DNA of 64,000 nucleotides from Zootoca vivipara (taxonomy: Eukaryota), in the NCBI RefSeq assembly GCF_963506605.1, contig NC_083284.1, positions 7,254,001-7,318,000 on the forward strand. The letters run 5' to 3'. The translations under genes were made by a program, and so were the position numbers. How positions within the stretch are numbered: position 1 is the stretch's first letter; every line of letters begins with the position of its first letter. Shown here one piece after another: positions 1,470-56,736 of this stretch. Under the pieces are notes generated by a model. It worked only from the letters and a program-made list of their open reading frames with translations, was not told where the DNA came from and searched no databases.

Positions 1470-2028
1470 CCTCCCCTCTAGTACTTTTTTAAAAAAGTAC
1501 TATTTACTATTGTTGTGCATTTATCTATTATCCATTGCTGCTTTCCTATTCAAGCCTTCATAGGTGTTACCAGAACAGAGTGGACAGTGAAACCTTTAAG
1601 TTTACCCCACACTGGACCGTCTGTGAAACAAAGCTGAGAGCAGCTTAGTTTTGGAAGCAGCTTAGTTGCTTTAATAATGAGGAAAAAATAAATAAAGTGA
1701 AGATGCCTTAGAAGTCGAATCTTGTACAAAATATCTGATTATACAAGGTGTACAGGGCTGTTGATTCCATAGCTTTTCTTAGGTTCAAAGTTCTTACATG
1801 TGCATATACTGTTACATGCCACCCCAATCTCTGAGCGGAGCAAGATTCCAGGGGTTCTGGTGTGCTTTACCCAGAGACCATGTTTCCATTTGGAAAATGA
1901 GGCACAGCAGAGACTGTGGTGTTTTGATGATATGTGGTTTATTTACACATATATACAACCTGAGCCTGCAGTGGAGGGGTTCCCAGCATTATACTCCAAG
2001 AGGAACTTGCCTTTTTGATAGGTGCAGC

Positions 2029-2704
2029 TAGTGATGTGAGGTGAGAATATTCTCCAGAGAATATTCTCGAGAATGAGAATATTCTTGAGAACATTCTCTG
2101 CTAGAAAATTCTTCTGAGAATATTCTCCACAAACTGTAAATTCTAATGTAAGAGCCAGTTTACAACCCACATTTATAAAATCTAGTAAATAATAAGTCAC
2201 GCTGTGGTATTGCCAGTGTAAGTAATGAATAATGATATTTTTTGATCCAGTTACATTACTGGGCATTGTGTCATTCACCATTGGCAGTTCTGAAATGTGA
2301 GCTACAGAAAACATTTTTTTTTTTGGGGGGGGGTTAAAAATGCTATTCATTTAATTTGATGAACATCTGAATTTGTATGTATTTCAACTATATGTAACAG
2401 CCTCCCCCCCCTTGCTATTTTGGTGTGACCTTATTCTTAGCAATTCTGTACAATTCTGGCCATACAGTGAATGAGAAGCAAAGAATGTGAATTCACTGCA
2501 TTGCCCCATTGAATAAAAGTATCTGTACAGATTTTGGTTGCCATCTGAACGAGATTATCCATGAATAAACATGTATATTCACTAATTATATCATTTTCAA
2601 TGCATTAAAATGAATATTCTCCTATTTTAAATGAAAATTCTCTAATATTCTCATTAATTGAGAAAATTCTCCAAAAGATTATTCTCAAGAATTTAACATT
2701 ACTA
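2029..2704. mobile_element. Non-autonomous hAT-type DNA transposon
   Basis: TIRs tagtgatgt / acattacta; 8-bp TSD ggtgcagc (2021-2028) / agtgcagc (2705-2712); subterminal GAGAATATTCTC palindrome arrays at both ends. Confidence 0.8.
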
Positions 2705-2777
2705 AGTGCAGCTCTGAATCCTAACAGACAACAGCCATCATCCTCTCACTCCAGCCTGCTACTTCTACGTTGTACTA

Positions 2778-3194
2778 CAGTGGTACCTCGGTTTATGAAC
2801 ACAATTGGTTCCGGAAGTCTGTTCATAAACTGAAGCGTTCATAAACTGAAGCGAACTTTCCCATTGAAAGTAATGGAAAGTGAATTAATCCGTTCCAGAC
2901 GGTCCACGGAGTAAGCGTTCATAAACTGAAGCAAACTTTCCCATTGAAAGTAATGGAAAGTGGATTAATCCGTTCCAGACGGGTCCGCGGAGTACTTAAA
3001 CTGAAGCGTTCATAAACTGAAGCATGGGTGTAATTGGTTCCGGAAGTCTGTTCATAAACTGAAGCGTTCATAAACTGAAGCAAACTTTCCCATTGAAAGT
3101 AATGGAAAATGAATTAATCCGTTCCAGATGGGTCCGCGGCGTTCATAAACCGAAAATTCATAAACCGAGGTGTTCATAAACCGAGGTTCCACTG
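2778..3194. mobile_element. Tc1/mariner (pogo/Tigger-like) MITE
   Basis: TA TSD; TIR cagtggtacctcggtttatgaacac / gtgttcataaaccgaggttccactg; internal repeats gttcataaactgaagc and tttcccattgaaagtaatggaaa. Confidence 0.92.
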
Positions 3195-3460
3195 TACTTC
3201 AAACTGATCCAAACATTCAGCTTACCTTCAGCCTAATGTTAATCTCATAGAATAAGCATGTGTTAACATTGTCTAGTACACAGTTTGATATACATGGTTC
3301 TGGCTTAATACACATTGGGTCTGGCTTAAATACACATTGGTTCTGCATACTCAGTTTTAACACTCCAAGCACTGACTAACACCTTTTAGACCCAGGAATT
3401 TAGGGTGTCTGGCACCCACAAACTCATTCATTTAAAGCTTTCAAACTTGGAAGTATAGTA

Positions 3461-3705
3461 CAGTCATACCTCGGGTTACAGCCACTTCAGGTTGCGTCTT
3501 TTCGTGTTGCGCTCCTCCTGGAAGTACCGGAACTGGTTACTTCCAGGTTTCGGTGCGTGCACAAGTGCTAAATCATGCTTTGAGCATGTGCAGAAGCGCC
3601 GAATCATGACCCACGCATGCGCAGACGTGCAGGCACGGGTTGCGAATGCTGTGGGTTGCGAACGCACTTCCCACACTGATCACGTTCGCAACCCAAGCGT
3701 CACAT
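3461..3705. mobile_element. pogo/Tigger-like MITE, right end damaged
   Basis: TA + cagtcatacctcgggtt left TIR; decayed right TIR gttcgcaacccaagcg; similar internal ggaagt and gcatgcgcag motifs to the 38401 and 51212 copies. Confidence 0.75.
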
Positions 3706-4842
3706 AGACAAGAAAGGAAGGAGAGTTTGGATTTATTTCCAACCACCGTGATCAAGTAAAGAAACTACATAAGCGCTATCAGTATTTTGTTCTTTCCCTT
3801 TCAAACTCCTTTAACATAAACACCCAATAAATATGTGTTGAAAACATGTACAGCTTTTCTTTGGGGCTGATACTTGCAGGGCCAAGTTTCTGCCCGAAGC
3901 AAATTTTTACAACTCTGCTTCAGACTTGGCGTTTATAGCAGAATTGCTGACATGTTATTACTGTGGCAGCCCTAATATTTCCCCATAGAGGTTGTGGGGG
4001 GGGGGGTCTATTGTGAGTGGCCTGAGGTATAGAAATCATGATGAGACACTTTGGAGTTTCTAGAATATGATTCAAGCAGTGCAGAATATAATCTTTTTTC
4101 AGGACAAGGAAATATTGCTATGCACTGCATTTTAGGAGTGAATCATTGACACTACTGGGACCTGTGCTTGACCTGGGCAAAACGTGATTGGTGTCTAAAT
4201 GATCATAGTAAATGTAATAACTAATCATTTGTACGATTTTTGACAGCTTAGAATAAGAGAAATGTAGTATAAAAGGGCCTGCAACTGTGGATCCAAAGCT
4301 AGAGGAATCACTCTCTGCATTAGTCTTGATGCTTTCTCTATATATGCATGAAGTTTCTAATCTTTATACTCACAGATCTTTCCTCACCAGTGACAGCTTA
4401 GCTTCTTGTTGCTCTTACCACAGTCTTCTTCTTGCTGTCCTTGACTTCTCTCTTCTTTTCCTGTTTTATATTCTGCTGTGTGACTTCCTTTGCCAGGAAT
4501 AGCCTTTTCATCAAGCCAACTTTCTCCCCTTTAATTACTCTAAAATCTGACAAAATTGACCTTAGTTACTATTGTTTCTTTCTCCTCTGCTACCACATAA
4601 ACATCCTCTACTATCAATTTAAGATCTTACAACTTTGGTCAGTCTCTAGTAAAGTCACCCACCCCCAACCCCAGGAGGAAGCATAATATAGAATCTAGCA
4701 CACTGGGGAGAACTGCTATGTCGTGGCAGGTAGCTGGGAAATGTGTAATAATAATAATAATAATAATAGGAGATCCACACAGGAAATAAGAACCAATCAG
4801 CTAGTGTAAAATCCCAGTAAAATGTGACAATGGATTGCCAAA

Positions 4843-5000
4843 AAGAACATAAGAAGAGCCCTGCTGGATCAAACAAAAGGCCCATGTAGTCCAGCATTCT
4901 GTTCTCACCGTGACCACCCAGATTCCTCTGGGACGCCTGCAAGCAGGACCTGAGTGCAATAGCACCCTCCCCACTTGTATGCCGAGGCATACTGCCTCTG
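4843..5000 (-). mobile_element. CR1-type LINE 3' end
   Basis: aagaacataagaagagccctgctggatca...ggcccatgtagtccagcattctgttctcac, a common squamate CR1 3' end; related copy at 49918. Confidence 0.75.
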
Positions 5001-5106
5001 ACACTACACTGGAAGCACCAGTTTATGAGCCTTGTAGGCTTGGTTTGAGTGGAATCCCAGACAATACTAAAGATCTGACTAGATAAACTTTGGGGTCCTA
5101 TCCCTA

Positions 5107-5463
5107 CAGGTGAAACTTGGAAAATTAGAATATCGTCGAAAAGTGCATTTATTTCAGTAACGCAACTTAAAAGGTGAAACCAATATATGAGATAGATGCA
5201 TGACATGCAAAGCAAGATATGTCAAGCCTTTATTTGTTGTAATTGTAATTATTTGTCGTTAGGCGGGTCAATTATGAATGGAATGTAATTGATGAAATGT
5301 AATAGCGGTATTTATTTTTGTATTATTGTAAATATTTGTTTTATTACTGTGGGATTTCCAAAAGAAAGCATTTGTAAAAATTAGAAGAAAAATAAAAAAA
5401 TAAGTTGCATTACTGAAATAAATGCACTTTTCGATGATATACTAATTTTACGAGTTTCACCTG
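5107..5463. mobile_element. Tc1-like MITE
   Basis: TA TSD; ~63-bp TIRs caggtgaaactt...tgcatttatttcagtaacgcaactta / taagttgcattactgaaataaatgca...gagtttcacctg. Confidence 0.92.
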
Positions 5464-6023
5464 TATTTGTATGAAAGAGAAGATGAGTGTTTAATGAAGC
5501 GTATGCCATCTCTAGTATGATGCATGTTGCAACTTTTGAATCAAATAATTGTCTATCCGGGAGCTATTTTTACACTGGTAGGACACAGTTTTGTTTGGCA
5601 TTTGCTTTCTGAACAGGCCCTGAAGCCCTTAAAATTGTTCTCTGTCTGGTATGAAATGTGTGATTTGGTGTTGGCTTTGCATGTTCCTGTAGGGAGCATG
5701 TTCAGTCTACATAAACTCTGAATGTACCTAATGGGAAAGCTAACCTATCATTTTATTGCATAATTGAAAGAGTGATACAGTATTGAGGTTGCTTGCATTT
5801 AATGGCTGCCCTTGGTAAACCATCAAAATCCTCGCTACATAGTGATTTTTATTAAATATATTTACACCTAACATTTCCCACTCTGCCTCCTCAAGTCTCG
5901 ATGATACATATTGTTAGGAGCCCATTTTAAAGCAGAAAAGGGGCTGTTTGGCTTTTCAGATCTAGGAGTATGTCCACTTCTTTATAGTCTTTGTGCTCTC
6001 CTTTTATACAATGATTTCCTACT

Positions 6024-6319
6024 AGGTAAAAAGGTAAAGGGTAAAAGACCCCTGGACGGTTAAGTCCAGTCAAAGGTGATTATGGTGTTGCGGAGCTCAA
6101 CTCGCTTTCAGGCCAAGGAAGCCGACATTTTCTCACAACAAACTTTCTGGATCATGTGGCCAGCATGATTAAACCGCTTCTGGTGCAACGAAACACTGTG
6201 ACGGAAACCAGAGCACATAGAAATTCTGTTTACCTTCCTGCCACAGTGGTACCTATTTATCTACTTGCACTGGCGTGCTTTTGAACTGCTAGGTTGGCAG
6301 GAGCTGGGACAGAGCAGGA
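6024..6319 (-). mobile_element. Sauria SINE (5'-truncated)
   Basis: (AAAGGT)n tail on +; diagnostic body tcatgtggccagcatg...tttaccttcc...cctatttatctacttgcac...gaactgctaggttggcagg. Confidence 0.9.
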
Positions 6320-6570
6320 ATATACTTTGTATATATACTTTGTAAATACCAGCATCCATATACTTTGTAAATACCAGCATCCAAACATCCTTTTTTTGTA
6401 CCCAATACAAACTTGTAACATGTCCACTCCACCTTACAGTATATAATTTACTCATTAGCATGGTGATTGATTTCCTTGATAGAACCTTCTGTCTGAGCAA
6501 AGGAACCACCAGCAGGAGTGAGGAAATTCAAACAGGGTGTCATACTGTCTCTTATATTTATACTCTAGTG

Positions 6571-6706
6571 CAGTGTTTCCCAACCTTGGGTCTTCAACTG
6601 TTTTCAGACTTCAATTCTCATCATCCCTGACCACTGGTCTTGCTAGCTAGGGATGATGGGAGTTGTAGTCCAGAAACAGCTGGAGGCACGAAGCTGGAAA
6701 ACACTG
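6571..6706. mobile_element. Short palindromic hAT-type MITE
   Basis: cagtgtttcccaac...ggaaaacactg termini; internal inverted repeat catcatccct / agggatgatg; related copy at 30242. Confidence 0.75.
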
Positions 6707-6853
6707 TACTGTATAGTTTCTCATTTTTAGAGGTGGGCTTAGGTCAGCAACTCACTCTTAGTTTTTTTGTTTCACTCCAGCAATTTTCACAAATTCTCAG
6801 ATCCTATATAGAAGCATGACAATAAGATTGCATAAATCTCCTCAGCTGTAATA

Positions 6854-7327
6854 CAGTGGTACCTTGGTTCTCAAACTTAATCTGTTCCAGAAGTCTGTTC
6901 CAAAACCAAGGTGCACTTTTCCATAGAAAGTAATGCAAAATGGATTAATACGTTCCAGACTTTTAAAAACAACGCCTAAAACAGCAAATTAGCATGAATT
7001 TTACTATCTAACAAGACCATTTATCCATAAAATGAAAGCAATCAATGTACTGCAATCACACAATCAATAGCTGAACTGGGCTCCATACAGTCACAAAAAC
7101 AAAACAAAAAAAGCCACAAGAACGCAAAATAAATAGCAAAAACAGACCGACCTCAGAATAACACTCAAAACGGAAGTGTGGCACTCAAAACGGAAGTGTA
7201 ACACTCAAATGGAGTATGTTCAGCTACTGAAAAAAATTCACAAAGTGGAACACTTACTTCTAGGTTTGTAGTGTTTGGGTTCCAAGTTGTTTGAGTACCA
7301 AGGCATTTGAGAACCAAGGTACCACTG
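6854..7327. mobile_element. pogo/Tigger-like MITE
   Basis: TIR cagtggtaccttggttctcaaa / tttgagaaccaaggtaccactg; TA on the left, CA (mutated) on the right. Confidence 0.88.
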
Positions 7328-7714
7328 CATATGAATAATTTTGTCCTCAGTTCCTCCCCTCTCCCATTGTAATGAATGTTTAGCTCAGATTTGAGGACCT
7401 GCATATCTGAATAGTGCCATAGCCACATTCGAGCCCCATGATAGACAGCTATGCATGCTGGCCTGAAAAAAATATGATGGTTGGTAGTGGGTGACAGTCG
7501 AACTCTATTGGTGCTAATGCCTGGCTTGCCGATTATTAGCTGTGTTTGGTTTTTTGACAGTCTTTGAACAATGGCTTAAGCTCACTACACCACAGTCATG
7601 TCTTTTTACAGTAAAAAAAATGAACTAAAATGATGTACTCACCTATACTGCCATAAGACATGAAGGCTTCATTGGTGACCCTAACTGCTGCTTGGTTATT
7701 CAGTGGCATGCCAT

Positions 7715-8000
7715 TAGAGCCATATTACACCTATTAAGTCACTTACACTTACCACCAGAACCATTCAGAGTCCAGTTCAAGGTGCTGATGTTGGTTTGTG
7801 GCCCAAATACTTAATGGAGTGCCTCTCCGGGTTATGTGCCAACCTGGCTTTTAAGATCCTTGGAGGGAGCCAGTGGACAATTCCAAATTGGCAGTGATTC
7901 AGGTTGGGGCCTTCTTTGGTAGTGGTTCCCTCTCTGTAAGTCATAATTAATGAATTCACTGTCTGCTTATGACACACCTCTTTACCCAGGCTTCTAATAC
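7715..8000 (+). mobile_element. Old L2 LINE 3' fragment
   Basis: Decayed motifs catattacacc, cagttcaaggtgctg, gggccttct, gacacacctctttacccaggct typical of the L2 ORF2 C-terminus. Confidence 0.6.
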
Positions 8001-9391
8001 TGTTTGTCGTTTGTCCTTTGGATCTTTTGTCCTTTGTCCTTGGATCTTTTGATTTGTTGCACTGTTCAGCAGATTTGTTCTAACCCTTATTTGAATTATG
8101 TAATGGTTTTAGAGATTTCAAACATGTTTTATTATTTTTTTGTGCTGTTTTATATTTATATCAGGGTTTCTGAACCTCTACAATTTTTTTAAAAAAAGTA
8201 AAATCAGATATACATTAATACACTAGAGATGCCAGCAGAATTTGTTATTTCAGGATTCTAATAAAATTTCAGGGGCTCTTAATACTCAGCTTCAAAGAAG
8301 AGGCAAGTATTAGGAGCCCAGGTTCTATGGCTTGAATTAAAATCAGAGATAGAGAAGATTCCTATCCAAGCATCCTTCCCATCTAGCTTTCCAACTCCTC
8401 TTTCCCTTTAAAGTAATTTTACTTCATTTGTGTAGCCTGTGATAGAAAGTAGTTATGGAGAAAGGAAAGGAAGAGGATATTTGTTTCCCCCATCCCCAAC
8501 ATCTGGTATGCCACCTTGCAACATACCAGGAGGACAAAAGTCCTTAACAACCCTTAGGAAATGTAGTTTCCTCAAGGGTGATTTCAATGTCAGTAGCACT
8601 TGGACAAACTACGGTATGTTTACCTGGGACAGCCAGGGTCGTGCATTTTCCTGGCATGCAGCTTTGAGAAAAATAGGTCTGGCTAAGTTCAAATTAGCTT
8701 GAAAATGAGTGGACCTTTCCTCCATTTTTTTGGGTGATTGTTAATAACTTGGCTTATTTTTGAGCCACTAAGTTTGGGTGGTTCACTCATCTGTAATATG
8801 GAGCGGTGGTTTGTGTAGTAGAGACCAAACTAGAATTAGCTGGGGTTGGGAAGGAGACTGCATTTTTAATTTTGTGATTTCAATTGTTTTTCTATATATA
8901 ATATGGGGATGCCATGTGATTCACATATAGCTTAGGTTCTACTTACCCTAAGTGGTGCAGGATGATAAATACAATTGATTGAACAGGAAAATGTAACCAT
9001 CTTACAAGAAAACACAGTATTGTGCAATAGAATGAAGTTACTCTGTCTTATTTCATCAGCTTCAATTAAAGAAGTGACCATATTTTGTTTCGGTTTTTAT
9101 GGGTTGTTCTGCTCTGAAAATTTCAGGCAACATGAAAATCATACTACCGTATATAACAATTTATCTTGCCCTTGATTTTCTTATGGAAATGGTATAGGAA
9201 TGAATATCAGGGCAACTGGAGTTGAAGTGGAGGAGAATTTTGTCAACTCTGATTTATTGGATACTAAAAATCCATTTGGATGCAAATCATCGTTCAGGAA
9301 CTGATGTGATGTGACATGTGTCATTGCTTTACTACCATTAAACTGTTTTTTCTTTGGTTAACAAATTTACTTTGAATGAAGTTTCCTTATC

Positions 9392-10614
9392 GGGTTCCGG
9401 TTTCCGCCGGCAGGAATGGCGGACCTGTTTTCCATCTCTCTGACCTTCGTAAGGAATTTGGCGGTTGCTAGGGGAGTAAATGGCAACCCCCTACCCTCTC
9501 CGGGGGTTACGGAGAGGGGCCGCTGGCCCGCGATGCCCCCAGACCCACTCCGACTGTTTTTGGAGTGGGGGGAGCTTGGGCTGAGCACTTACGAGGGCCA
9601 GGACTCCCGGACGCTAATCTGCATGGCGGGGATTTCCATGGTTAAAGAAGATAATTAGGCTTAAATCTATGGACATACTTCAGAAGGAGGGGAAGAAGCG
9701 CTGTTTACTGCTGAGAAATTTATGCTGCTGAGGGAGAGGAGTCAAAGGCTGTATTTCATCTGAAAGAAGGATTGATGGGGACGGAGCGATAAGGGAAGTG
9801 AGTTTTTTTTTTTCTTCATATGAGTTACTTCGTACCTTCCCAGATGCGATGTCCTGGTTTGTTTGGAGTGAAAGAGAAGCAAAAGACTGTGTGAGTTGAA
9901 CTTTATAAACTGTTGTTACTGAGCATATTTTTTAAAGATGTGGAGTTGCCGACGAGAAAAGCCCCCCTCTAGTTAGACGGAAGGAGTGCCTGGACGCGTT
10001 CGGAGGATTTATGAGCTGTGACGCACTTTGAATTGGAGCAGCGACCTGAAGCTAAGTTCAGCTATAGGGCAAGGAGATCCATTAATTTACCAAGAGTCTA
10101 TGGTTTGATGTTTGGGTCTTCTGCCTGGAAAAGCTGTAAATTTTATAAAGATCGTTAATCTACCCGGTTATGAGAGAAAACGAAAGTGTTTTGAGTTTTT
10201 TTAAGATGGCGCTGCTTCGTGTTGACGCAACAGGGAGCTCCAGACCAAGAAGATTTATGGGGAGGCTGGACTGATTAACCCACACAGGAGAAAGAACATT
10301 TGTGAAACCTTGTTTGATATTTATCTCAGCAGCTGGGAAACAATCGGTTGAAAGTGGAAAACATCTATGTGATTGTAAGGGAAAGATTCGGATTATTATG
10401 AACTTGGAGAGACGATTTGAACTTTAGAAAAAAGACGGCAGTGGACGGTTGCGAGGAATCCCCAATTTCTTGAAGCATGGGAACCCAAAAAATTTTTTTA
10501 GATGATTTGGCATAATATTCGGTTTGATTGATATATATGTGTATAATTTGAAATAACGAATGTGATATAATTGGTTTTAATTGGAAAATTAATAAAAATA
10601 TGTTTTAAAAAAAA
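9392..10614 (+). mobile_element. Non-autonomous, probably L1-mobilised retroelement (copy E1)
   Basis: 18-bp TSD gaatgaagtttccttatc (9374-9391 / 10615-10632); GC-rich 5' end gggttccggtttccgcc...atggcgg; AATAAA at 10591 and A tail; no RT motifs seen. Confidence 0.88.
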
Positions 10615-12187
10615 GAATGAAGTTTCCTTATCTAAGAAGAAAGTTAGAGTTAAATGCAGCAAATAATAGAATTACCTGCTTGTCTACTGATGCACACTAT
10701 CACAGTTTGTTTCTTTGCTGCTTAAAAATACCACAGCAGCACTGCTAACTCCTCTTTATCAGGAAGGGCAAATGTTTTGGAGAGAATTGTGCAGTCACAG
10801 TTGTTAGTTTGTTCATATTAATATTTTTCCAGTTAAATAATTAAAATACAAAACATAATGGATGCATTTTAAGTTTTACTTATTATTTGAATTTTTAAAA
10901 TCTGCTCATTTGATTAAGCTCCACTGGTTAAGCAAATCAGTGGCCAGTCCACTCTGTATATGTCTTTGTGTTTTCCTGTGTATTTAGTAGATTTTTATAC
11001 CCACTGCCTTGTGGGACATCTTCAAGAGAAGAAAAGGGTAAGGAGTAAGCCCTACACAAATCTTGAGTGGAGTCCCAAGGCGGTTGGATGGTGTCTTGCA
11101 TGCCTCCTTCCAGCAACTCCTGCAGCCTAACTGGTGCCAAACATACTGCTCTGCTTTCATTTGGATCACATCAGCCCAGGACCTCCATACATACTGCTCA
11201 GGCTTGTGCCCTGGAGAGGTCACTTCAAAGATTAGGGGAGTTGTAATCCAAAACACTTAGATAATGGAGAAAAGTTGTTTATCTCAATTGGTTTTAGTAC
11301 TTCCCTGCTGCTTGTTGAGTTTATTGTTTCCCAGTTTGCAAATGTTGAAGACAGAAGTGATGGAAACCTTCACCTTCCCTATACAGCCATTATAATAATA
11401 AGTTATATGATGATTTGAACCACCTGTGGTGTTCACGTCTGTTACAGTACTTTGAGAATTTGATGATCTTTACATTGTTTATGCACCCTCTCTTACATAA
11501 AATCTTCTCTGGGTAGGTGTTTGTTGAAAGTTGCACTTCTACACAGCATTTTTTATGTCCAGCAAGCAAGCACTTTGTACAGAATACTGTTGCTTTATTT
11601 ATATAGCACCATCTATTCATGGCACCTTTGTTAGTCCCTAGTGAAAGGGACCTGCAACCTTAAAAATAGGCACGGGAAGCAACAAAGGCAGTGGTAAAAT
11701 ATGCAATTACTTCAATTACATATACTTGTTACAGTAAGGCATTGAGACTAGAGAGTTGTTCCAAAGTATTCAGGGAACCAGTATATTCCGAAAACAGGTA
11801 TGCAGGAAGTAAGAGGATGGATGAGGTATCACAGAGTGTTCTGGGTGCAAAGATAAGGGGCAGCAAGGGTGGAGTAATTTCAAGGAGTAGGAAGCTTCTC
11901 TGGTAGAAATGTATGAGGATATAAAAGCAGAGAGATAAGGTTGGCAAGGCTTAGGGGTTTTAAAGGAGGTAAAGTGATCAGAGTGATGAAATAAATTATC
12001 ATGGCAGCAAAATCATGGCAGCAAAGTCAGACAAACGCAAAATGATGAGGGCATGGATAAAAAAGGGGGGTTATGAGGAAAGGCTGTATTTTTCTTCTAA
12101 TGTTAAAGAAGCATCAATATGATTTGGTGATGGATTGAGTACAAGGAGCAAATACAAGAGAGGAGTCAAAACAGAAATTGCTAGACA

Positions 12188-13064
12188 CAGCATGAAGCTC
12201 CGCCACCGGGGGCGGAGAGCAGACGCGCTGCCCCCAGAGACGTGGTGCACATTTTGGGGGCGGGGCGTGCGCAGGGGCGGGACGCATGTTTGGGTGTGTG
12301 TGTCAGGAGTATGGGCAGGAGTCAGGCTCTGGGGCCTGTAGTGCTTTGCAGGACTGGGGCATGCCTCAACTTGTGCTAGAGAAGCAAGGCGTGGCCACAG
12401 GAGTATGGGCAGGAGTCAGGCTCTGGGGCCTGTAGTGCTTTGCAGGACTGGGGCATGCCTCAACTTGTGCTAGAGAAGCAAGGCGTGGCCACACAGGTGA
12501 AGTCCTCAGCTTGTGCTGGAGAAGCAAGGAGTAATCACCCAGGTGAGGCCACTTGAGATCTCACTGCACCTGGTGGCAGGAGCTGGGAGGGATAAAAGCC
12601 CAGCATTTCCCTTCAGCTCTTTGCCACAGCAACGCTATCCCTGCCTGGTTGCATCTGGCCTCCTGTTCCTTGGACCCTTGCCTTGTTGCTGCCGTGCTTC
12701 TTGGACCCCTGCCTCGCCTTCGCCTTGCTTCTGCCCCGTGGACCTTTGCCTTGCTTCTCGTTCCTGGATCCTTCGCCTTGCTCCTTGCTCCTTGGACCAT
12801 TGCTTCGCCTTCGCCTTGCTCCTGCCCCGTGGACCTTCGCCTTGCTTCTTGTTCCTGGACCCTCGCTTTGCCTTTGCCCTGCTTCGTGCCCCGTGGACCT
12901 TCGCCTCTGCCTTCGACCCTGCTTCTTCACCACCATCTTGCCTCTGGTCCTGACGCCCGCCGACCGGACCGTGACAGGGTGGGATGGACAGCCGCGATGG
13001 CGCCCCTGGGATCGTGCTGCTTGGGGAGGCCCGCCCCCACCGCCCCTATCTTCCTACGCCCCTG
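12188..13064. mobile_element. GC-rich hAT-type non-autonomous element (contains a solo LTR)
   Basis: Perfect 8-bp TSD gctagaca (12180-12187 / 13065-13072); right terminus ...cctacgcccctg; left TIR reduced to cag. Confidence 0.7.
12301..12976 (+). mobile_element. Solo LTR (Gypsy-like)
   Basis: tgtca...tgaca termini; 5-bp TSD gtgtg/gggtg; TATA-like gataaaag at 12591; internal ~95-bp tandem duplication (12304-12492) and pyrimidine-rich cttcgccttgct repeats (12660-12925). Confidence 0.85.
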
Positions 13065-14161
13065 GCTAGACAACAGTGTGAATAGTAAGGTTGTCAATAC
13101 ATAAGCGTGAAAAAGGAGAAGAGGGCTTGGGAAGAAAAGTAAGATTAGTACCGTATCAAACTTCACCCCCTTCAGATTAATCTGTGTATGTAGTAAACTC
13201 ACACAGGCATTTAAACCTCTGCGCCCACCCCCAACACCACACTGGTGATGAAAATCATGCCATTCCGGTTGACACTTTCCCAGTGGCAGCATTGCTCCTG
13301 CTGGAACATTGGATCAGTGGCTGTCAGGCAACTTAGGTCAGGAAAGCTTGGTGGAATGCATCAGGTTCTCTGCCTTAGGTGGTTCCTCTTGTATCCATTT
13401 TAGAGACAGATAAAAGTCTATGAAAACTGTTTCAAGGTAAATTGAGTATGTAATGTGCTACAAAAACCAAGGCTTTTCTTTTTAAATAAATAATAACAAG
13501 CTCCCACTGCTCTTCACTTGAATTTTACCAACAAATATAGTGTACTTTGCTAATCGACATTTCATGTTCAAGACCCAGCTGGAAATAAATAAATAAATAA
13601 TGAGCATTGGCTGCCTATTTGGCTGGCTAATGCTTTAAATGATTTCATTCTGTTATACGTGGCGTTTCCACCTAGTTTACTTGCATACCAATTCCCACTC
13701 CAGTTCTGAGCAGTTTAAAATCACGATTATGCTCTTCACTGTTCCCAGCTGATTCTGCTCACAGTTGATGGGGATTCAAAAGACTCTTTCTTCTTCTACC
13801 TGCCAATGCAGAAGGTCTCTCCCATCATCCCTTCTTGCCACCACCTTGCTTGTGCTTGTCAGAGTTAATTGAGCCTTCTCAAAAGTTCTGTAGCAAGCTT
13901 TGCAGATTGGCCATTTCTATTAATCTCAGAAATGTTAGTAGTTTATGAAAGGTGTTTTTAGAACTTTGTCTCATTTAAATAAATAGTAAGATATTTAATT
14001 CCTCAGGCACTTAAAATGCAAGAGGCCTCAACAGATTTGTTTGTATTTGGGTGCTGAATTACTGTAAGGATTATTGTTGTATAGCCTGCTTTCAATTAAG
14101 TTCATTGGCTTTTGCCTCCCATATCTACTGCAACAGCAAAAAAAATAGCAGATACATTCAT

Positions 14162-14194
<33 letters not shown>

Positions 14195-16611
14195 TGTGTG
14201 CGTTTTAAATGGGAGGGGGTTTGAAGATTGAATGTGGCAAGGTTTGTGATTGAAAAGTTGAATCAACTGTAAGAAAGGAGCAGAGAATATAGGCACAATA
14301 AACTTCTTGATATCAGTAATTTTGCCTATGATTCACTTCATTGACGATATTAGTTCATTGTTTTGTATCTGTTCTCTAGAACAAAGATATGACGGTGTAC
14401 CATGTCTAAGGCACTCTTTCCCCTTCCCATTATTCTTAAGTGTTTCTCTCGTGATTTTAACAGCTTAAAAAGATATAACAATTTCTCACCATGTCCTTGT
14501 GAAAGTCAGTTGTTGAACATCTGCTGACTGAATGGAACTTTTGTTGTAAATTTACTAACTTGAGATTTTTTAGCCCACTCTCCCTTTGTGAGTAGCAATT
14601 TGTACTATAAGTTTCATTGTATATTAAAATTTAGCAAGTGGCATGACTGCTATCTACCACTCTTTTTGTTCAAGGATTAATCATATCTGTTGCAGTGCTG
14701 GCAGTTGAAATGGAAAGAGTTTGCCAGGTGCATCCTTGCCAAGTAGTATGCACATGTAGGCATTTGCATATTGGTGGAAAATTGTTTCTTCCTTGGTGTT
14801 AATGCTTTCCCAAAGTATGTGTTTGCTGAAAAAGTTAAGATAAATTTTCTACATGACTTCAGATACAGCTTAGTATGGATGAGACTTCACAGTACACAAG
14901 TATAGTCGATGAGCATAGTAGTCTGCCAACAGGTCATCCACACTATATAAAAAAGGGTATTTGAGAATTTTAGGGGAGGGCTAATATAGGTGGAATACAT
15001 TTAAGAAAAGCTTATCTGAACCAGTTGTAGGTATTATCATTTCTGTTTTATATTTGCATATATAGTCAGAGATGGGAGTGACTAATGAGTGAGGGTGTGT
15101 CCTTAAAATATAAGACACTTTTTGTTTTCTGTCTGTAATTTTTCTTAGTGACAACTTTGCCCATGGGCATGCTACTTTATTACTCCATCATCTGTGGGTG
15201 CCGTCATTCCAAGTATATTTGACAGACAATATATTTCCTGATACTGTACAACCTTACAGATAGGGAGGGTTGGGGGACGCAGCAGTACCTAAACATGACT
15301 TTGGACAAACTATACTGGAAATGCTAGAAACCAGCCAACAAAAGTAATACTTCTCTACCCAGTTCTTGTGCCAAAGCCCCAGTGGGCAAGGCCTTGGAAG
15401 TGCTGGCATGTTGACAAAGTTACCACGCTGCCAAATCAGTCTGGACTAATATAGAGTATAATGCTGGCACTGCAGTTTGCAATCTGGCACCATTCCTAGA
15501 TTTGAGAAGATATTGCCAACATTTAAAAACATCTTGGCCCCTTTATCATTGTCTCATTCAGTTTTGTTCATGCATCCTCATTGAGTTGCTTCCACCAAAT
15601 CTGGCAATTGGTGAAGCAGGCTGCAGTGCTGAAAATGTGATAAGAGTATATATCCCAGTCAATAATATTACTAAGTGGTTGCTTTCAGGTTTTAGAGTGC
15701 AGAGTTTTAGGGCTACCAAACTTAATTCTATAGTAGAATAAGTCATTCACATTATTTTTGGAGTACTTGTGCTCACTTCTCTGTCAGGCAGGTTCAAGTT
15801 AACTTTTGGTAGTGCCAGAGAGACATAATAGTATTTCGCAGCAAGAATTTTCCCTGCTTCGTGGATTCTGATTGTTTTAGACTAGCATTGTAACTGAATC
15901 TCATATATTTGCACATTTGCTTAGCACATGTTCAGATGTATTTGGGTGATAGTTAGCTCCCCCCCTATAACTCTGTATATATAATTCATATGCAAATTGC
16001 TAAAATTAAATAACAATAGACAATATAGTAATTCCCATATTGTGGGATTTTGTTTTTAACAGCTTTATTATGAGTATGAAAATTATATGTAATAAAATAT
16101 AATTACATTTCATTTTTTCATATTGTTTTCTATTCATTCATATTGCTCAGAAATGCTGGGATTTATTACCTCCCTCCACCCCATAGATTAGCATATTTTG
16201 GTTTCTCTGTGAATGTTTCAGTCCTCAAGCTCTCTGCTATTTTACTACCAGCTTTACTGTGAAACATGGACCACTTATAAACACCATCTCCAACTCCTTG
16301 AAAGATTTCATCAATGGTATCTGAAAAAATCTACACATCATTTGGAAAAACAGGTCAGTGTGCTGGAAGAAGTGGTGGTTGGGGGACGGGACAGTGTCAA
16401 AGCAATGATTCTTCAACACCAACAGTTGGACTGGTCTTGTTCAGATGCCTGATTATCATCTTCCAAAGCAACTACTTTATTCCGAACTTAAAAATGGAAA
16501 ATGTAATGCTGGTGGTCAACAAAAGAGGTTTAAAGACTCTCTCAAGGCAAATATGGAAAAATGTAGTATAAACTACATTATATACACACACACACACACA
16601 CATACACATAC

Positions 16612-16865
16612 GTAGAACCAATGTGGCGTAGTGTGTTTAAGAGTGGTAGTCTCGTAATCTGGTGAACCAGGTTCACGTCTCCGCTCCTCCACATGCAGCT
16701 GCTGGGTGACCTTGGGCTAGTCACACTTCTCTGAAGTTTCTCAGACTCACTCACCTCACAGAGTGTTTGTTGTGGGCGAGGAAGGGAAAGGAGAATGTTA
16801 GCCACTTTGAGACTCCTTAGGGTAGTGATAAAGCAGGGTAGCAAATCCAAACTCCTCTTCTTCTT
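16612..16865 (+). mobile_element. tRNA-derived CORE/MIR-related SINE (Squam3-like)
   Basis: A box tggcgtagtg and B box ggttcacgtct; CORE motif gctgggtgaccttgggctagtcac; 3' end ttagccactttgagactcc and (CTT)n tail. Confidence 0.8.
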
Positions 16866-16885
16866 AAACAACAACTGGGAACACT

Positions 16886-18190
16886 TACACTGGACTTCCG
16901 CTTGGATCGCCATAGAAAATGGCTGAAAATACCATCTCTCCGGTTACCACGGGGTAATTTACAAGGCTGTAAATGGGAGTATGCAGCCTCCCAAAGTTTT
17001 CCCAGGGGGTACGCGAATATGCAGTCTCATCTACAGATGCCCACCACCAGCTTCTACTTCCGAAGGAAGGAGGGGCTGGGGGCACTGGATGAAAAGCCCC
17101 CATCGGAGCTTGGATCTCCTGGGAAGCCGATTCTACGAGCGAAAACAGGCTCCATGACAAGAGAAAGATTGGATATAAGTCATGGACATGCTTCAGACAA
17201 GGAAAGAAGATTTATTCTGCTAAGCTCAGCCACTGAGAAAACAAAAGATAACAGAGAAATGTACCCAAGAGCAAGAAATGGTATGTGACGGAGCTGAAGG
17301 GGGGAGTGAGAACTTTATATCGTTGCTTTACTGTGTCTTACAATTTACTTAACAAAACTCCCTCCTGAAGAACCATAAACAACATTTACAAGGCAAGCGA
17401 GATCAGAAAGTGGGAAATTTATTGAATTAATATGGTTTCTTAAATATATAAACTGTGTGAATTGAAAATATGTATGTATTCTTGGATTCGCTTGGAATGT
17501 GGTTAAAGATTCCTTAAAACATGGACATCAAAGAGAAGCAATCTCATTAGCGGCTGGAAACTTGTCAAGAAACTTCTGAGTTATGATGCAGTTATAATTT
17601 AGATTCCGCCATATTGGAGATAAAGCCGGCTATGATATTATTCAAAGGGGGAGGGAGCCATAAATAAGACATTAGATGTGTGTTTATAGCTCTGACCTGG
17701 CAAAATCTCCCCTGAAAAGGCTATATTGAGTAGCGATCTGGAGAAATCATCACAGAGGCTTAAAGCTTTGATTTATGGGGACTGCTCGAAGATGGCGGCA
17801 GCTGGCCTTGAGAAGGATCTTTGGATTTCTGGACGGACTTGGCAAGATACCAGCGTGCGAAGAGACAGTGCTAATTTACAGAGGAATCATAGGCATAAAT
17901 TCACACAGAAATATACGGTTTGGTCAAACTTGCTTGCTCGAATAACTCAGGGACTTGAAAGTAGATAGAAGGATTTTAATAGACTATTGGATAAGATCTG
18001 GACTATATTGATTAGAAATGCAATGACTATAAGAGGACTAGGCTTTCTGAGTCTGAAGCATGGGAAGTCAAATTTAAATTTGTATAATTTGGCAGAAGAT
18101 TTGGATTAATTGTTTAATTGATATTTGTATAATTTGAAAATGGATTAGATATTTAAATAGGAAAACCTAATAAAATGTTTATTAAAAATA
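16886..18190 (+). mobile_element. Non-autonomous, probably L1-mobilised retroelement (copy E2)
   Basis: 20-bp TSD aaacaacaactgggaacact (16866-16885 / 18191-18210) at a TT|AAAC site; 5' ggacttccgc...aaaatggc; AATAAA near 18169 and A-rich tail; no RT motifs seen. Confidence 0.88.
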
Positions 18191-19060
18191 AAACAACAAC
18201 TGGGAACACTGGCATACGAGTGCTCCAATTGAAGAACAACCTTTACCAAAGGTGTCATGGACTATGAAAAAGCATGAACTCAGGGTGAAAAGGAGAAATG
18301 AACTAAGAGGAAGGCACATTTGGCAAACCCTCACTGTGATCAACCTCTACCCAGAAACCTGTCTCCCCACTGTGGAAGGGTATGTGGATCCAGATTTGGC
18401 CTCCATAGTCACTTACGGACACACCATTAAGATTATTTTCATGGAAGACAATATTACTCGGCTTCAAGTGATCACCAAAGAAGATTAGTGTATAGACACT
18501 GTGCCGCCCCCCTCCAGTACACTGCATTAATCCTTAGGAGGCTTTTTCTTTATTAATAACATGTATGGTTGTGAATCTGAAAAACTCATAGAATATTATT
18601 AGAGTTATTAACATGTATTCATATTTGACAACCACACCAAACATTTTTCTGCCTTGCATCAGGAGAACATAGGATCAAATTTCAAATTAAAGAAAGAAGC
18701 AAATTAATTCCTCGCTAATAACTTTTGCTTGACATGTGATCTGCTTATCTTCTGTTAAATCAGCCAGTTGTAATTAGATCACATTTCAGAGCAGCATCGT
18801 GAACTGGAACAGTTCATGTCAGCCTAATTACCAAGGAGTGAAACTTGTAGAACTGTACATGTATACTAGTGTATCTGTTTGAATTTGACTTTAAGTTATT
18901 CCTTTTCCATGGTGCATTTTAAACAACAAATCATTGAAATGTCGAACTCCAAGGATTATTGTCTCATCTGCTGTTAGTTTATTTAGTAATTAGTAATAGA
19001 GATAATAGAAAAGAACAAATGGGCTCCTTGAAGATTAGTTGGTGTTCAAAAAATAAACAC

Positions 19061-21081: not shown

Positions 21082-21675
21082 GTTTCCACAATTTTGGCCA
21101 CTAGTATAAATGCACATTGCTATCTTTTAATATCCTCTTTATTACTTTTGTGTGCAGAATCCTAATGCTTGAGTTCTGAACTAAAAGATGCTGAGAACCT
21201 GTCTAATCCATTAAAGCACTTCAGAAGGTGCTTATGCTTGAGGAATTCCACTGGAGTCGAGACTAATCATGTGCAAAGAGATGTTTATGCCTGGCTGCTC
21301 CATCAGATGAAACTACTTAGCAGTTTGTTTCAGGAAAGAGACTTTGAATCCTGCTTCTTCACTTTTTACATTGTATATTTAATTCACTCATACCGTATTT
21401 ATCCTCTGATTACCAATACTGTAAAGGCAGGTATTCATAACCAATGAGTGGTGGGGTTGATGTTTCTCTCATAGAGCTATAAACAAAAGCAGTCAGATTT
21501 TGGCCTGCTAGTGGTAATACCCTTGATTTAGTACTCTTTCCTCAGTGAGGTATACTTGGCTGGTTCCCGGATCAGTTTCCTCAGACTAAGAAATACCTTC
21601 TTTAAAAAAGAGGTCGGTCTTCCATCACTCATTGGGGACAGTTTGCTTTATTTTAAAATCTTAATGTTGACATAT

Positions 21676-21919
21676 CCTGCCAACCTAGCAGTTCGAAAGC
21701 ACGTCAAAATGCAAGTAGATAAATAGGAACCGCTACAGCGGGAAGGTAAACGGTGTTTCCATGTGCTGCTCTGGTTTGCCAGAAACGGCTTTGTCATGCT
21801 GGCCACATGACCTGGAAACTATACGCCGGCTCCCTCGGCCAATAATGCGAGATGAGCGCGCAACCCCAGAGTCGGTCACGACTGGACCTAATGGTCAGGG
21901 GCCCCTTTACCCTTTACCT
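21676..21919 (+). mobile_element. Sauria SINE (5'-truncated)
   Basis: Diagnostic body and (ACCTTT)n tail; 15-bp TSD ttaatgttgacatat (21661-21675 / 21920-21934). Confidence 0.95.
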
Positions 21920-22851
21920 TTAATGTTGACATATAGCTCTCACATCATAGCTCTGTGGGAGGAGAGTAAAGGAGGGGGAAGTATTAGTATTTTATTAGTA
22001 TTATTAATATGGTTTATGATTTTTTAAATGTATGAATGCTTTAAATTTTGTAAGACACTGTAGGCATCCTTTGTGGACTGAGTGTTGCGTGGTAAAAGCA
22101 AATAACAGAAAAGTCAGTGGAGGTGGATCTACTAGGAGTTTGCAAATAGTGAGAGCAGTTCAGGAGATTTTGAAGCTGGGTTCCTAGAAAGTTTATCAGA
22201 GATTCAGTGGTGGCAATCAGCTTTCCTGAAAGGCAGCTTGGCCAGTGTCCACTGTTGTTGATTTCTTCTACATTGCACAGCCTCAGGTGTGTTTTGGCTG
22301 CATTCTAGGCTGTTTTCAATTTGCCTGCTGTAATCCCTTCACAAAGCCTAATAGGATGGCCCCGTGCCCAGGACAAACTGTTTGCCTTAGAATGCATTTT
22401 AGGGGGCTTGGCAGCACAAAGGGAATTGTTTCTTTGGCAAATGGTTAGCTTTAGGGGAGTCCTTGGAAGACAAATCATTGCCAAAAATAGGAAGTGAGCA
22501 TCTCTGAAAAGGAGGTAGATTGGCTAACAATACAGCAGTGGGGAAAAACAGGTAAAGCAGTCAAAACAATTTTTTAAATCTAATGCACAGACGTGTGAAA
22601 TGTAATACAATTGGTATAAAATCCCTACCTCCCAGCTAGTCCCCCTCCCCATTTTTTTTCTTACTAAGACAAGACTTAGTTGCTATGGTAGCCTATGGCA
22701 ATTTTGCAGCTATATAGAAGAATTGCGTGTGATTAGCCTAGCTACAGAAAATCCATATAATCCACAAGATGACTTCCTATATGAAAGAAAGCAACAAAAG
22801 CTGTAAATTTATAGGTTTGCAAATTGAACTTGTTGACAGAATAAACTTTCA

Positions 22852-24895
22852 TTTTTTAATGTTTTTTGAAGCTAATGAAAAGCAAGAACAGATATTCATC
22901 CAGAAAGAAAACAGTAATAAATGTTACATCAAATCACAATAAATTCTTCTTAAAATTATAACGACTTCCTGTCACCCCATCATGCATCTACCACTTTTTT
23001 TTTCTAACACACTACCCATTTTCCTTAATTAATTTCCATTAAAGATTTATTCTATAAGTATCCACAATATCACAGAAATCATTCAAGGCCTGCCATTGAA
23101 GTCATGTTATTACAATGCTCCTTACGGTATTTTTTTTGTACATGTCCCATTCTTTAATAAATGTCTGTTCACTATGATTTCTCAGTCATTTTTGCCAACT
23201 TGGCGTATTCTAACAGTTGCCACTCCAGTTTAGTTGGGTTTTTTTCCCCCTTTTCAATTTGTAGCGATTAATATTATTGCAACTACTGTGGCGTACAAGA
23301 ATATTCCCCTCACTTTTTAAGGTATATCTGTGCCTAGTATCCCCAGGAGGAAGGCTTCCATTTTTATTTTTATTTTAAATAAAAGATATCTTGAACATCC
23401 TTTTGATCTCATTATAAATTACATCCCAAAAATCCTTTATTTTCTTACAGGTCCACCACATATGTAGCACTGAACCTTCCGCTTCCCCACATCTCCAACA
23501 TTTACTTGAAGTGTTTTTATACATTTTAGATAATTTTAATGGTGTCAGGTACCAGCGGAATCACATTTTCATGAAAAATTTCTTTCATGGCACAACATGC
23601 GGTGAACTTCATATCTACCTTCCATTGCTTTTCACAAACATCCATAGGGATGTTGTAACCAAAATCTTGAACCCATTTAGCCATTACTGATTTTTCCTCC
23701 TCCCCCTTGACTTCCCAGTCAAGGAGGAGTCGGAACATTTTAGTGAGAATTTTCCCTTTAGAATTGATCAGTTCTTTTTCCAGTCTGGAGGGTTCCATTG
23801 CAAAACCATTTCTTTTATCAAGTTTAAATATCTTGTGGAGTTGGTGATATTGTAACCAACCTGACAGGTACCCCCTAATTTCTTCAAAGCTTTTTAGTTT
23901 CAAATGATTTTCTTCCTCTTTTAACAATACTTTATATGTTGGCCAGTTCCCTTTCATATTTTTCTTCTTCACTGCCAGTGCTTCTAGGGGAGATATCCAC
24001 TATGGAGTTTGGGGCTCAAGCAAACCTTTGTATTTTGCCCAAACCGTATATAGAGGCTTCCTTATAACATGGTTTAAAAAACTTTTGTGTATCTTGACCT
24101 TGTCGTAGCCTAAATAGGCATGCCAACCGTAACGAAGAGGTCTGTATTTTGTAATATACACCATTCCCTGATCCAGGATAGACAGGCCGCCTCATAGTAG
24201 AGTTTCAGATCTGGCAGGGAAAATCCCCCTCTTTCTTTGAGATCAGTTTATAATTTATGCTTAATCCTGGTCTTTCCCCACTGCCAGATATATCTCGTTG
24301 CCAATCTTTGAGGCAGTCTGCTCCCCCGATCACGGGAATTGTCTGAAATAGGAAATAGGAAAAGTATTTTCGGTAAAACATTCATTTTGATGGTGGATAT
24401 ACCCCCAAAAGATAGTTTTAATCTGCTCCAGATTTCTAGATTTCTTTTAATCTCCGTCCAGATCTTAATGTAATTATCTTGAAATAGGTTGATATTTTTC
24501 ACAGAGATCCATATTCCCAAATATTTTGCCTTTTTACAAATCATCAAGTTTGAAGCTCTTTGTAAATCATCTCTCTCCTGTGCTGTTAGATTCTTAACCA
24601 GGAGCTTTGTTTTAGAACTGTTTAGTTTGAACCCCGCCACCTGCCCAAAATCCTTAATCGTTTCTAATACCTTTAACAAACTTTCTTTTGGGTTCTCTGT
24701 CATAATGATGAGATCATTGGCAAATGCCTTTAGAGAATGCTTTCTTTCCTAATGTTATTCCTTTTATATTTTTGTCCTCTCTTATTCCCCCCCCCCAGCA
24801 CCCAGCACTTCCATTACCAGAATGAATATTAGCGGGGATAGCGGACACCCTTGCCTTGTCCCTTTTCTTATTACAGTCTTCTTTAATGTTACCAT
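22852..24895 (-). mobile_element. 5'-truncated L1 LINE (disrupted ORF2 RT and C-terminus, 3' UTR)
   Basis: KGTRQGCPLSPLIF, FANDL, DFGQVAGFKLNSSKTK, KYLGI, IKMNVLPKILFLF, CWRCG..HMWWTC; several frameshifts; T-rich tail at about 22852. Confidence 0.93.
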
Positions 24896-25526
24896 GTTGC
24901 CAGATCTTAGCCCGTTGGCTGCCTCTTCGAAGTTCCACTTGAGAATGCGAAGTTGGAATCTTGCATTCACCCTAGATATAGTACATACACTTCACATTTT
25001 TTTTAAAGAATGGTAAACTTTATTGATTTTTGCCATGCTCATAAATTCTTATACCTTTCATGAATTTAAGAACCCTTAGGAGCTGGGGCAGTACCTAAAC
25101 CCACCATTTTTATAACTTGGTTACTTCCTTCTCCCTTTCTTGATATGCAAAATAGTTGAGTAGTTCTTGCTCACTGGATTATACACAGACCAGTTAGGCT
25201 TTGTCTAGTTATTTTATGTTTTAGTGCAGAGATTTATTGTGTGTTTCTGTGAGCTTTCCTTGTATCTTTAGAATGTTGTCAGAACTTTTGAGTGTCCACT
25301 CAAACGGGCTTGTGCAAGTATGGGTTTTCTGTTCATTTGCATTGATTGTCTGGGAGTAGATGAATATGAAATTGTCAATACTTCTTGGAATGACTTAATG
25401 AAAGGTATACAACATATAGATCTTTAAAAGAAATAAATACACATGTTTTACATTCTTGGGTTGTGTAAATCCCTCTTGGTTTAAATTTGCTTTTTTCCCA
25501 TGAAACAAAACAGAAGGTAAGTAATT

Positions 25527-54228: not shown

Positions 54229-54558
54229 CACCATTCTTAGCCAACCTCTTTACTCACATAGAGGATACTGGCCGCATCCCCAGGGATTGGGGAACAGCCA
54301 TAATGGTTCCATTCTATAAAAAGGGCAACAGAAGGGACCCAGCGAATTACAGGCCGATCAGCTTACTAAGTGTGACTAGTAAGCTCTATGCAAAACACCT
54401 CTTTAACAAGTTTACAGAATGGCTAGAGAAGGAAGATATCCTGGCAACTGAACAAGCGGGCTTCAGACCCGGCAGGTCCACAACAGACCACTGCCTAATG
54501 TTACAACATCTCATAGACAAGTACAAATCATGAGGGCAGGCCTCACTATATGCCGCCT

Positions 54559-56388: not shown

Positions 56389-56736
56389 CACTATACGCCG
56401 CCTTTGTAGACCTAAAAGCAGCCTTTGATACAGTTTCCAGAACTAGACTCTGGGACAGACTACAGGGCACCACAATTGATAGACAGCTTCTGCTACTAAT
56501 TCAGGCACTGCACGCAAACACGGCTCTCAGTCAGGTACAGCCGCCTAGGACACCTAACAGGCCACATTAAAATCTACAAGGGAGTCAGGCAAGGGTGCCT
56601 TTTGGCCCCACTACTATTTAACTTTTTTATAACTTAGTAGCCACACTTAATGACTTAGAACTTAATCCACCAAGGCTCGGAAACCTGCACATTTCAGTCT
56701 TGTTATATGCCGATGACACAGTAATTCTATCTAAAA

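Follow-up and report, generated by a model that had tools for sequence, protein, structure and literature searches.

We analyzed a stretch of 64,000 nucleotides (nt) from the lizard Zootoca vivipara (RefSeq assembly GCF_963506605.1, contig NC_083284.1, positions 7,254,001 to 7,318,000 of the forward strand; hereafter, the window), which contains no N. Positions 9392-10614 of the window are occupied by E1, a full-length copy of a non-coding, L1-type retroposon of 1,223 bp that lacks reverse transcriptase (RT). E1 lies on the plus strand, as do all the features of E1 and of its relative E2 described below, and is flanked by an 18-bp target-site duplication (TSD), gaatgaagtttccttatc, the two copies of which (9374-9391 and 10615-10632) are identical at 18 of 18 positions. 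The element ends with an AATAAA polyadenylation signal (10591-10596) and a tail of eight A (10607-10614) that abuts the 3' TSD, both directly readable in the sequence. An earlier annotation, made from the sequence alone (hereafter, the original prediction), had described a 1.2-kb unit with an 18-bp TSD, AATAAA and an A tail; all of these were recovered at the same positions, so that E1 does carry the long TSD and poly(A) that are the hallmarks of L1-type insertion. The pre-insertion site, cttt/gaatga, is a partial, imperfect match to the TT/AAAA-type site of the L1 endonuclease.

The 5' terminus of E1 (GGGTTCCGGTTTCCGCCGGCAGGAATGGCG, 9392-9421) is of L1 type and contains two ETS-like TTCCGG motifs and a YY1-like ATGGCG, with TTCCG at 9395 and 9402 and ATGGCG at 9416. 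It opens a 5' untranslated region (UTR)-like head and body (9392-10202) that is structured, rich in GC and CpG at its 5' end, and homologous to segments S1 and S2 of E2. The predicted fold of the head is better than that of shuffled sequences (z = -2.1) and includes both hairpins listed in the original prediction (ccctctccg/cggagaggg and cccactcc/ggagtggg), which are present along with the TTCCG and ATGGCG motifs as it had described them. The head is followed by a AAGATGGCG motif (10203-10211) that is common to E1 and E2 (17789 in the latter) and may represent a YY1-type site or, alternatively, the vestige of an ORF1 start; the open reading frame (ORF) that begins there is 22 codons long. The tail block (10471-10606), a candidate L1 3'-end module, is the part of E1 that is most conserved in E2 (74% identity). 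The GC content of E1 is 44%, rising to 57-66% in the first 200 nt, and the element contains 43 CpG dinucleotides, with an observed-to-expected CpG ratio of about 0.7 compared to 0.33 for the 64-kb window. Together with the perfect TSD, this ratio suggests that E1 is a young insertion.

E1 has no detectable coding capacity. Its longest ORF encodes 80 amino acids (aa) and has no homolog in the protein collection searched; no Pfam domain, in particular, no RT, endonuclease or ORF1 domain, was detected in five ORFs of E1 and E2, and tblastn with lizard L1 ORF2 proteins yielded no match on either element. An Rfam scan of positions 9000-18500 assigned E1 to no family at E-values up to 1, and ARAGORN predicted no tRNA in the same interval. 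Thus, the absence of a tRNA head, an RT and a long ORF, as originally proposed, is borne out by Rfam, tRNA and Pfam searches and by the ORF list. There is no variable number tandem repeat (VNTR) or composite structure in E1, and a GGTGGCAG hairpin module that was specifically looked for is absent from E1, E2 and the third element of the window, E3. Given that it is 1.2 kb long and lacks an RNA polymerase III (Pol III) head, E1 is not a short interspersed element (SINE), as had been predicted.

The second element, E2 (16886-18190; 1,305 bp), is a diverged relative of E1 that shares the same architecture and is colinear with it over the full length. E2 is bounded by a 20-bp TSD, aaacaacaactgggaacact (16866-16885 and 18191-18210, identical at 20 of 20 positions), begins with tacactGGACTTCCGCTTG...ATGGCT, and ends with AATAAA (18169-18174) and a short A-rich stretch. 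Its insertion site, ctt/AAACAAC (TT/AAAC), is a good match to the L1 endonuclease site; these two sites, of E1 and E2, are too few to establish a site preference. E2 contains no ORF longer than 128 aa, none of its ORFs includes a Pfam domain, and the Rfam search of E2 produced nothing but one chance-level match to a bacterial small RNA.

Comparison of E1 and E2 with nhmmer yields a single, end-to-end colinear match (E-values of 3.1e-15 and 2.7e-20), whereas the similarity detected by blastn is limited to the last ~150 nt (71% identity over 152 nt, E-value of 4e-11). The global alignment scores far above block-wise shuffles that preserve local composition (z = 10.6), and each of the four segments delimited by shared motifs also exceeds the shuffles (z = 7.0, 5.7, 2.5 and 7.9), with identities of about 59-62% per segment and 74% in the tail. 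The colinear motifs quoted in the original prediction were found at the positions given there, namely, gacggagc (9780 in E1 and 17287 in E2), aagatggcg (10203 and 17789), tgaagcatgggaa (10471 and 18054), and gtataatttgaaa near the 3' end of both elements. AAGATGGCG and TGAAGCATGGGAA / tgaagcatgggaa lie 268 nt apart in E1 and 265 nt apart in E2. No further copies of the E1/E2 type were detected within the window by blastn or nhmmer. To judge from these alignments, E2 comes from another lineage, strongly diverged from that of E1 (~60% identity) yet built to the same design, and the conservation of the architecture despite this divergence implies that the design is either old or recurrent.

Several structural features are shared by the two heads. 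The conserved block GACGGAGC..AAGGG.AGTGAG (9780-9802 in E1 and 17287-17310 in E2) ends in a sequence resembling a splice donor, GTGAGT/GTGAGA, that is unspliced in both elements. A strong hairpin is located ~150-185 nt from the 5' end (9540-9575 in E1 and 17045-17080 in E2), the two stems occupying homologous alignment positions and differing in sequence. The E2 head also folds better than shuffled sequences (z = -3.7), and RNAalifold applied to E1 and E2, that is, to n = 2 sequences, identified 12 base pairs that are changed on both sides.

The copy number of E1-like elements was assessed by aligning public sequencing runs to positions 8900-11100 at a minimum of 80% likeness. In a DNA run from the same organism, the contig depth in the unique, single-copy flanks of E1 is 51-56, and the summed contig depth from 9392 to ~10610 is 1.2-7 x 10^5, with sharp edges that coincide with the TSD; the ratio of the two is about 2,000-13,000, although depth summed over contigs does not amount to a calibrated copy number. 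Altogether, 4,283 contig pieces align to E1, including 1,274 that are at least 99% alike, 1,365 at 95-99%, 1,106 at 90-95%, and 538 below 90%. Thus, the E1 family probably consists of thousands of copies, in agreement with the high-copy, diversified family that had been postulated. Two DNA contigs connect unrelated sequence straight to position 9392, indicating that the same 5' end recurs in other copies. Moreover, contigs from a second organism cross positions 9596-10097 and 10169-10489 contiguously, with differences of a few per cent. Because the interior is contiguous in other copies and in the second organism, the architecture is family-wide and not the result of a one-off deletion, and E1 is not a 5'-truncated L1, in line with the original prediction. 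The depth and the shared interior jointly dispose of a single-copy processed pseudogene and of a deleted L1 with unique breakpoints. Exact-pattern scans for other copies in metagenome and prokaryote-genome contigs came up blank, as expected of microbial collections.

A further repeat of very high copy number (10972-11100) begins ~360 bp downstream of E1; its summed DNA depth is 2.8-4.7e4, compared to a depth of 51 for the unique flank. In one contig, position 11076, which lies in this repeat, abuts the 5' end of an E1-type element from another place in the genome.

The 5' ends of both elements point to L1. According to Boissinot and Sookdeo 2016 (PMC5381506), clade-1 L1s of Anolis begin with a conserved GACTTCCGGTG-N8-ATGGCG, have 5'UTRs with a mean length of 1,268 bp (792-1,465), 45% GC and ~56 CpGs, and possess AT-rich 3'UTRs that end in AATAAA and poly(A). 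E1 starts with GGGTTCCGGTT-N13-ATGGCG, and E2 with tacact-GGACTTCCGCTTG-N14-ATGGCT, in which the 8-mer GACTTCCG recurs unchanged from the L1 5' consensus of that paper. Over their first ~30 nt, both elements match the clade-1 motif but with a longer spacer; the CTTCCG/ATGGCG head, which had been singled out in the original prediction, matches this L1 5' terminus. Within the 64 kb, the pattern TTCCG-N3-30-ATGGC(G/T) occurs at the starts of E1 and E2 alone, against 0.53 occurrences expected. The length, GC content and CpG content of E1 and E2 also fit the published description of the clade-1 5'UTR, and the E1 head and body (9392-10202) agree with it in both length and GC.

The 3' end of E1 was compared to the single L1 tail available for this purpose, that of an old, 5'-truncated L1 ORF2 fragment in the window (~22990-24898, minus strand). 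This fragment, which is riddled with stop codons and covers the RT through the CWRC motif, was identified by a HMMER search with its RT and then by tblastn using the ORF2 proteins of Podarcis and Anolis; its best protein matches come from Podarcis muralis (~50-62% identity) and the L1 ORF2 of Anolis carolinensis. There is a weak, colinear alignment between the last ~150 nt of E1 and the 3' end of this fragment (23000-23200, minus strand), the score of which is reached by 1 of 500 shuffles (p ~0.002). A putative remnant of the ORF2 C-terminus (EAWE in place of EDWG) looked tempting by eye but failed against shuffles. From the 5' motif and the tail alignment, it appears likely that E1 and E2 descended from L1, and the 3' end of E1 is probably of L1 type, too. 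The claim that the family is distinct from L1 was too strong, as these elements appear to be L1 derivatives produced by deletion.

Transcription was examined in one run of raw RNA reads, sampled at ~6 in 100, which contributed 3,575 reads to positions 8900-11100. Coverage of 9418-10305 amounts to 170-570 in one direction, usually some 10 times that in the opposite direction (3 to 40 times, depending on the bin), showing that E1-like heads are transcribed mostly from one strand. In most stranded RNA libraries, the dominant direction is that of the sense RNA. From position 10306 to the end of E1, coverage is 14-57 in both directions. The drop near 10306 may mark the point where E1 diverges from its expressed relatives. 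A stretch of polypyrimidine followed by CAG lies just past the drop, at 10318-10336.

The interpretation that best accommodates these observations, and that we consider probable, is that E1 is a young copy of a high-copy, non-autonomous, internally deleted L1 derivative of the SIDE (short internally deleted element) type that is mobilized in trans by L1. E1 would have retained an L1-type 5'UTR head with an internal RNA polymerase II (Pol II) promoter and lost both ORF1 and ORF2. Under this scenario, the L1-like head would drive Pol II transcription from the first nucleotide of the element or close to it, and the RNA would be polyadenylated under the direction of the element's own AATAAA. The L1 ORF2 protein (ORF2p) supplied by autonomous L1s would then nick a TT/AAAA-like site in trans, and target-primed reverse transcription from the poly(A) end would leave TSDs of 15-20 bp. 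Both the promoter activity of the E1 head and mobilization in trans by L1 are steps that we infer from the organization of the element.

Several observations weigh against this interpretation. Descent from L1 is deduced from a short motif with a spacer of 13-14 nt, not 8, and from one weak tail alignment, whereas the alignment of the E2 tail with the L1 fragment is not significant (78 of 500 shuffles reach its score), and protein-level similarity to the ORF2 C-terminus is significant for neither E1 nor E2. As pointed out above, the depth that underlies the copy number estimate is uncalibrated. The strand-biased RNA coverage ends abruptly at ~10306 although DNA depth remains high on to 10614, and the source of the abundant transcripts may be relatives that have only the head in common with E1, for example, full-length L1s or members of the 2-kb family described below. 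No pile-up of RNA 5' ends is reported at 9392, the start for which the original prediction had proposed to look in RNA data, and 76 RNA reads extend upstream of 9392 into a fairly consistent, unrelated sequence, AATGAGTCCCACTGAGATGAGAAAGAAGCA (agreement 0.82), which is absent from the window; these reads could originate from a longer relative or from a single locus that is highly expressed and has a copy in an exon. The Pol II-driven transcription postulated in the original prediction is accordingly putative: the RNA is strongly strand-biased over the first ~900 nt, but it shows no start at 9392 and includes the upstream reads.

Three other origins can be envisaged for E1. Derivation from a single retrocopied, spliced host mRNA or long non-coding RNA (lncRNA) would explain the TSD, the AATAAA, the A tail, the GC-rich 5' end and the absence of introns. 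Such a plain processed pseudogene is extremely improbable and effectively refuted by the copy depth, which exceeds that of the flanks thousands-fold and stays high over the entire 1.2 kb, with shared ends; in addition, there is a diverged full-length relative, E2, 6 kb away, and E1 has neither coding capacity nor a homologous protein. There is a small chance that a host transcript founded the whole family, for example, a lncRNA with an ETS/YY1 promoter inside the transcribed region, in which case L1 would be the mobilizer only and the L1-like ends would be coincidental or convergent. ACTTCCGG (ETS) and ATGGCG (YY1) are indeed common promoter motifs, the sequence likeness of the E1 and E2 heads to an L1 5'UTR consists of these motifs, and the similarity to the L1 tail is weak and confined to E1, with no nhmmer match of E1 on the L1 fragment of the window. 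In both elements, however, the motifs lie within the first 30 nt, right after the TSD, as they do in the L1 consensus; a promoter must sit within the transcript to travel along with it, which is the solution adopted by L1; and the size, GC and CpG match those published for the clade-1 5'UTR (PMC5381506).

The remaining origin, to which we assign a similarly low likelihood, is repeated generation of E1 and E2 from different L1 families through spliced or deleted mRNAs, with sites conserved across families, in the manner of SpIREs (spliced integrated retrotransposed L1 elements); spliced L1 insertions have reportedly been documented in humans in the work on SpIREs. The divergence between E1 and E2 is comparable to that between lizard L1 families and yet the spacing of the motifs is 268 versus 265 nt, the donor-like GTGAGT/GTGAGA block is conserved in both heads, and the E1-like RNA coverage ends at ~10306 as if the expressed RNAs continued differently. 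Nevertheless, the donor-like site stays unspliced in both elements and the polypyrimidine-CAG stretch at 10318-10336 is still inside E1 rather than removed. Furthermore, many contig pieces show a likeness of 99% or more, and other copies and the second organism have the same interior, which fits a short form that amplifies itself. The number of E1-like copies implied by the depth is in the thousands, in contrast to the L1 families of lizards, which are reported to be low-copy (PMC5381506). An internally deleted L1 derivative that propagates with the help of L1 remains our preferred explanation for E1.

A more far-reaching version, which strikes us as unlikely, is that the two elements belong to an ancient lineage of L1 hyperparasites that lack ORFs and propagate themselves, a lineage that diversified alongside the L1 families of lizards and now outnumbers its autonomous partners by orders of magnitude. 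If this were the case, the structured head and the 3' block would have been kept since lizard L1 proteins recognize specific RNA features and not poly(A) alone, and heavy parasitism in trans could be among the causes of the low copy numbers of autonomous L1s in vertebrates other than mammals.

The third element of the window, E3 (54559-56388, minus strand), is a 1.83-kb RT-less retroposon inserted in an RT-coding fragment of a long interspersed element (LINE) and flanked by the TSD cactata[t/c]gccgcct (54544-54558 and 56389-56403). E3 encompasses an acidic ORF of 229 aa that ends with GVG-stop, and its T-rich 3'UTR is followed by a tail of AAAA and then nine G, not pure poly(A). The original prediction had included E3 among the relatives of E1, which does not hold: global alignments of E1 and E2 with E3 are at the level of shuffles (z of about 0 to 1.3), and the tail of E3 shows no similarity to the tails of E1 and E2, ruling out E3 as a member of the same group. 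E3 belongs to another family of ~2-kb elements with an acidic ORF and is probably 5'-truncated.

Among the known non-autonomous elements, the closest analogs of E1 are the SIDEs of non-LTR retrotransposons, elements that have been called rare and listed from Drosophila, Anopheles, Trypanosoma and Lepidoptera only in a 2019 paper (PMC6740152); the examples include TbRIME/ingi of Trypanosoma, Ag-Sponge of Anopheles, the R2 SIDEs of Drosophila, and the CR1-related Persaeus/Zenon of Lepidoptera (PMC6740152). Like these, E1 appears to carry the 5' terminus of a LINE and probably its 3' terminus as well, contains neither ORFs nor a Pol III head, and would depend on a partner LINE; as in Persaeus, a high copy number is combined with a poorly conserved middle. 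Unlike the listed SIDEs, the partner of E1 would be a vertebrate L1, the head is long (~0.8-0.9 kb), and the element has a poly(A) tail and long TSDs; the parallel is limited in that the homology of the E1 ends to the partner amounts to a motif plus one alignment that is weak. HAL1 (half-L1), a non-autonomous mammalian L1 derivative without ORF2 that is mobilized by L1 (PMC5753468), keeps ORF1, whereas E1 and E2 encode neither ORF1 (Transposase_22) nor any other ORF recognizable by Pfam.

The likeness to SpIREs consists in the likely derivation from L1, absence of internal sequence, and retention of both ends along with the TSD and poly(A). Human SpIREs are said to lose segments of the 5'UTR or of the 5'UTR and ORF1 only and to be sporadic by-products, whereas E1-type elements lack both ORFs and are inferred to be present in thousands of copies. 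The hominid SVA elements resemble E1 in being non-coding, ~1-2 kb long, polyadenylated and flanked by long TSDs and, as E1 presumably is, transcribed by Pol II and mobilized by L1; they differ in being composites of Alu-like, VNTR and SINE-R (HERV-K) parts and not derived from L1, whereas E1 is not composite. SINEs possess a Pol III head of tRNA, 7SL, 5S or small nuclear RNA origin and are usually shorter than 700 bp, compared to 1.2-1.3 kb for E1 and E2. The E3-type, ~2-kb, ORF2-less elements likewise lack RT and possess a TSD and AATAAA but encode an acidic ORF of ~200 aa, in contrast to the non-coding E1 and E2. A literature search, the scope of which did not extend to Repbase and Dfam, found no description of an amplified family of ORF-less L1 derivatives in lizards. 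Thus, although the strategy of parasitizing L1 is known, it is apparently undescribed for the L1s of reptiles.

The rest of the window harbors several unrelated repeats. A SINE-like repeat with internal sub-repeats of ~58-150 bp (TACAGTGGTACCT...GTTCATAAACTGAAGC) is present at 2762-3170, 6838-6962 and 40834-41590, and other repeats of SINE type are located at 6145-6274, 21675-21920, 40167-40400 and 53877-53990. A perfect tandem duplication of 94 bp occupies positions 12304-12491, in a region of 57% GC, and a GC-rich array of about six units of 114-121 bp is found at 58700-59400, in a region of 54% GC; these tandem arrays may be minisatellites associated with CpG islands or promoters.

In lizards, frogs and fish, L1 is represented by many diverged families, each with a very low copy number, for reasons that are debated (PMC5381506). 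Against this background, thousands of young, non-coding L1 derivatives would show that the L1 machinery of lizards is very productive in trans. Outside mammals, the E1 family would represent an L1 parasite of Pol II type rather than a SINE, similar to SVA in function and to RIME and Persaeus in structure. E1-type units probably end up as 'Unknown' or are erroneously split as 'LINE/L1' in de novo repeat libraries, and their CpG-rich, promoter-like heads can seed transcription in host genes. An element of this type is a natural test of the cis-preference of L1 and of the RNA features that give access to ORF2p.

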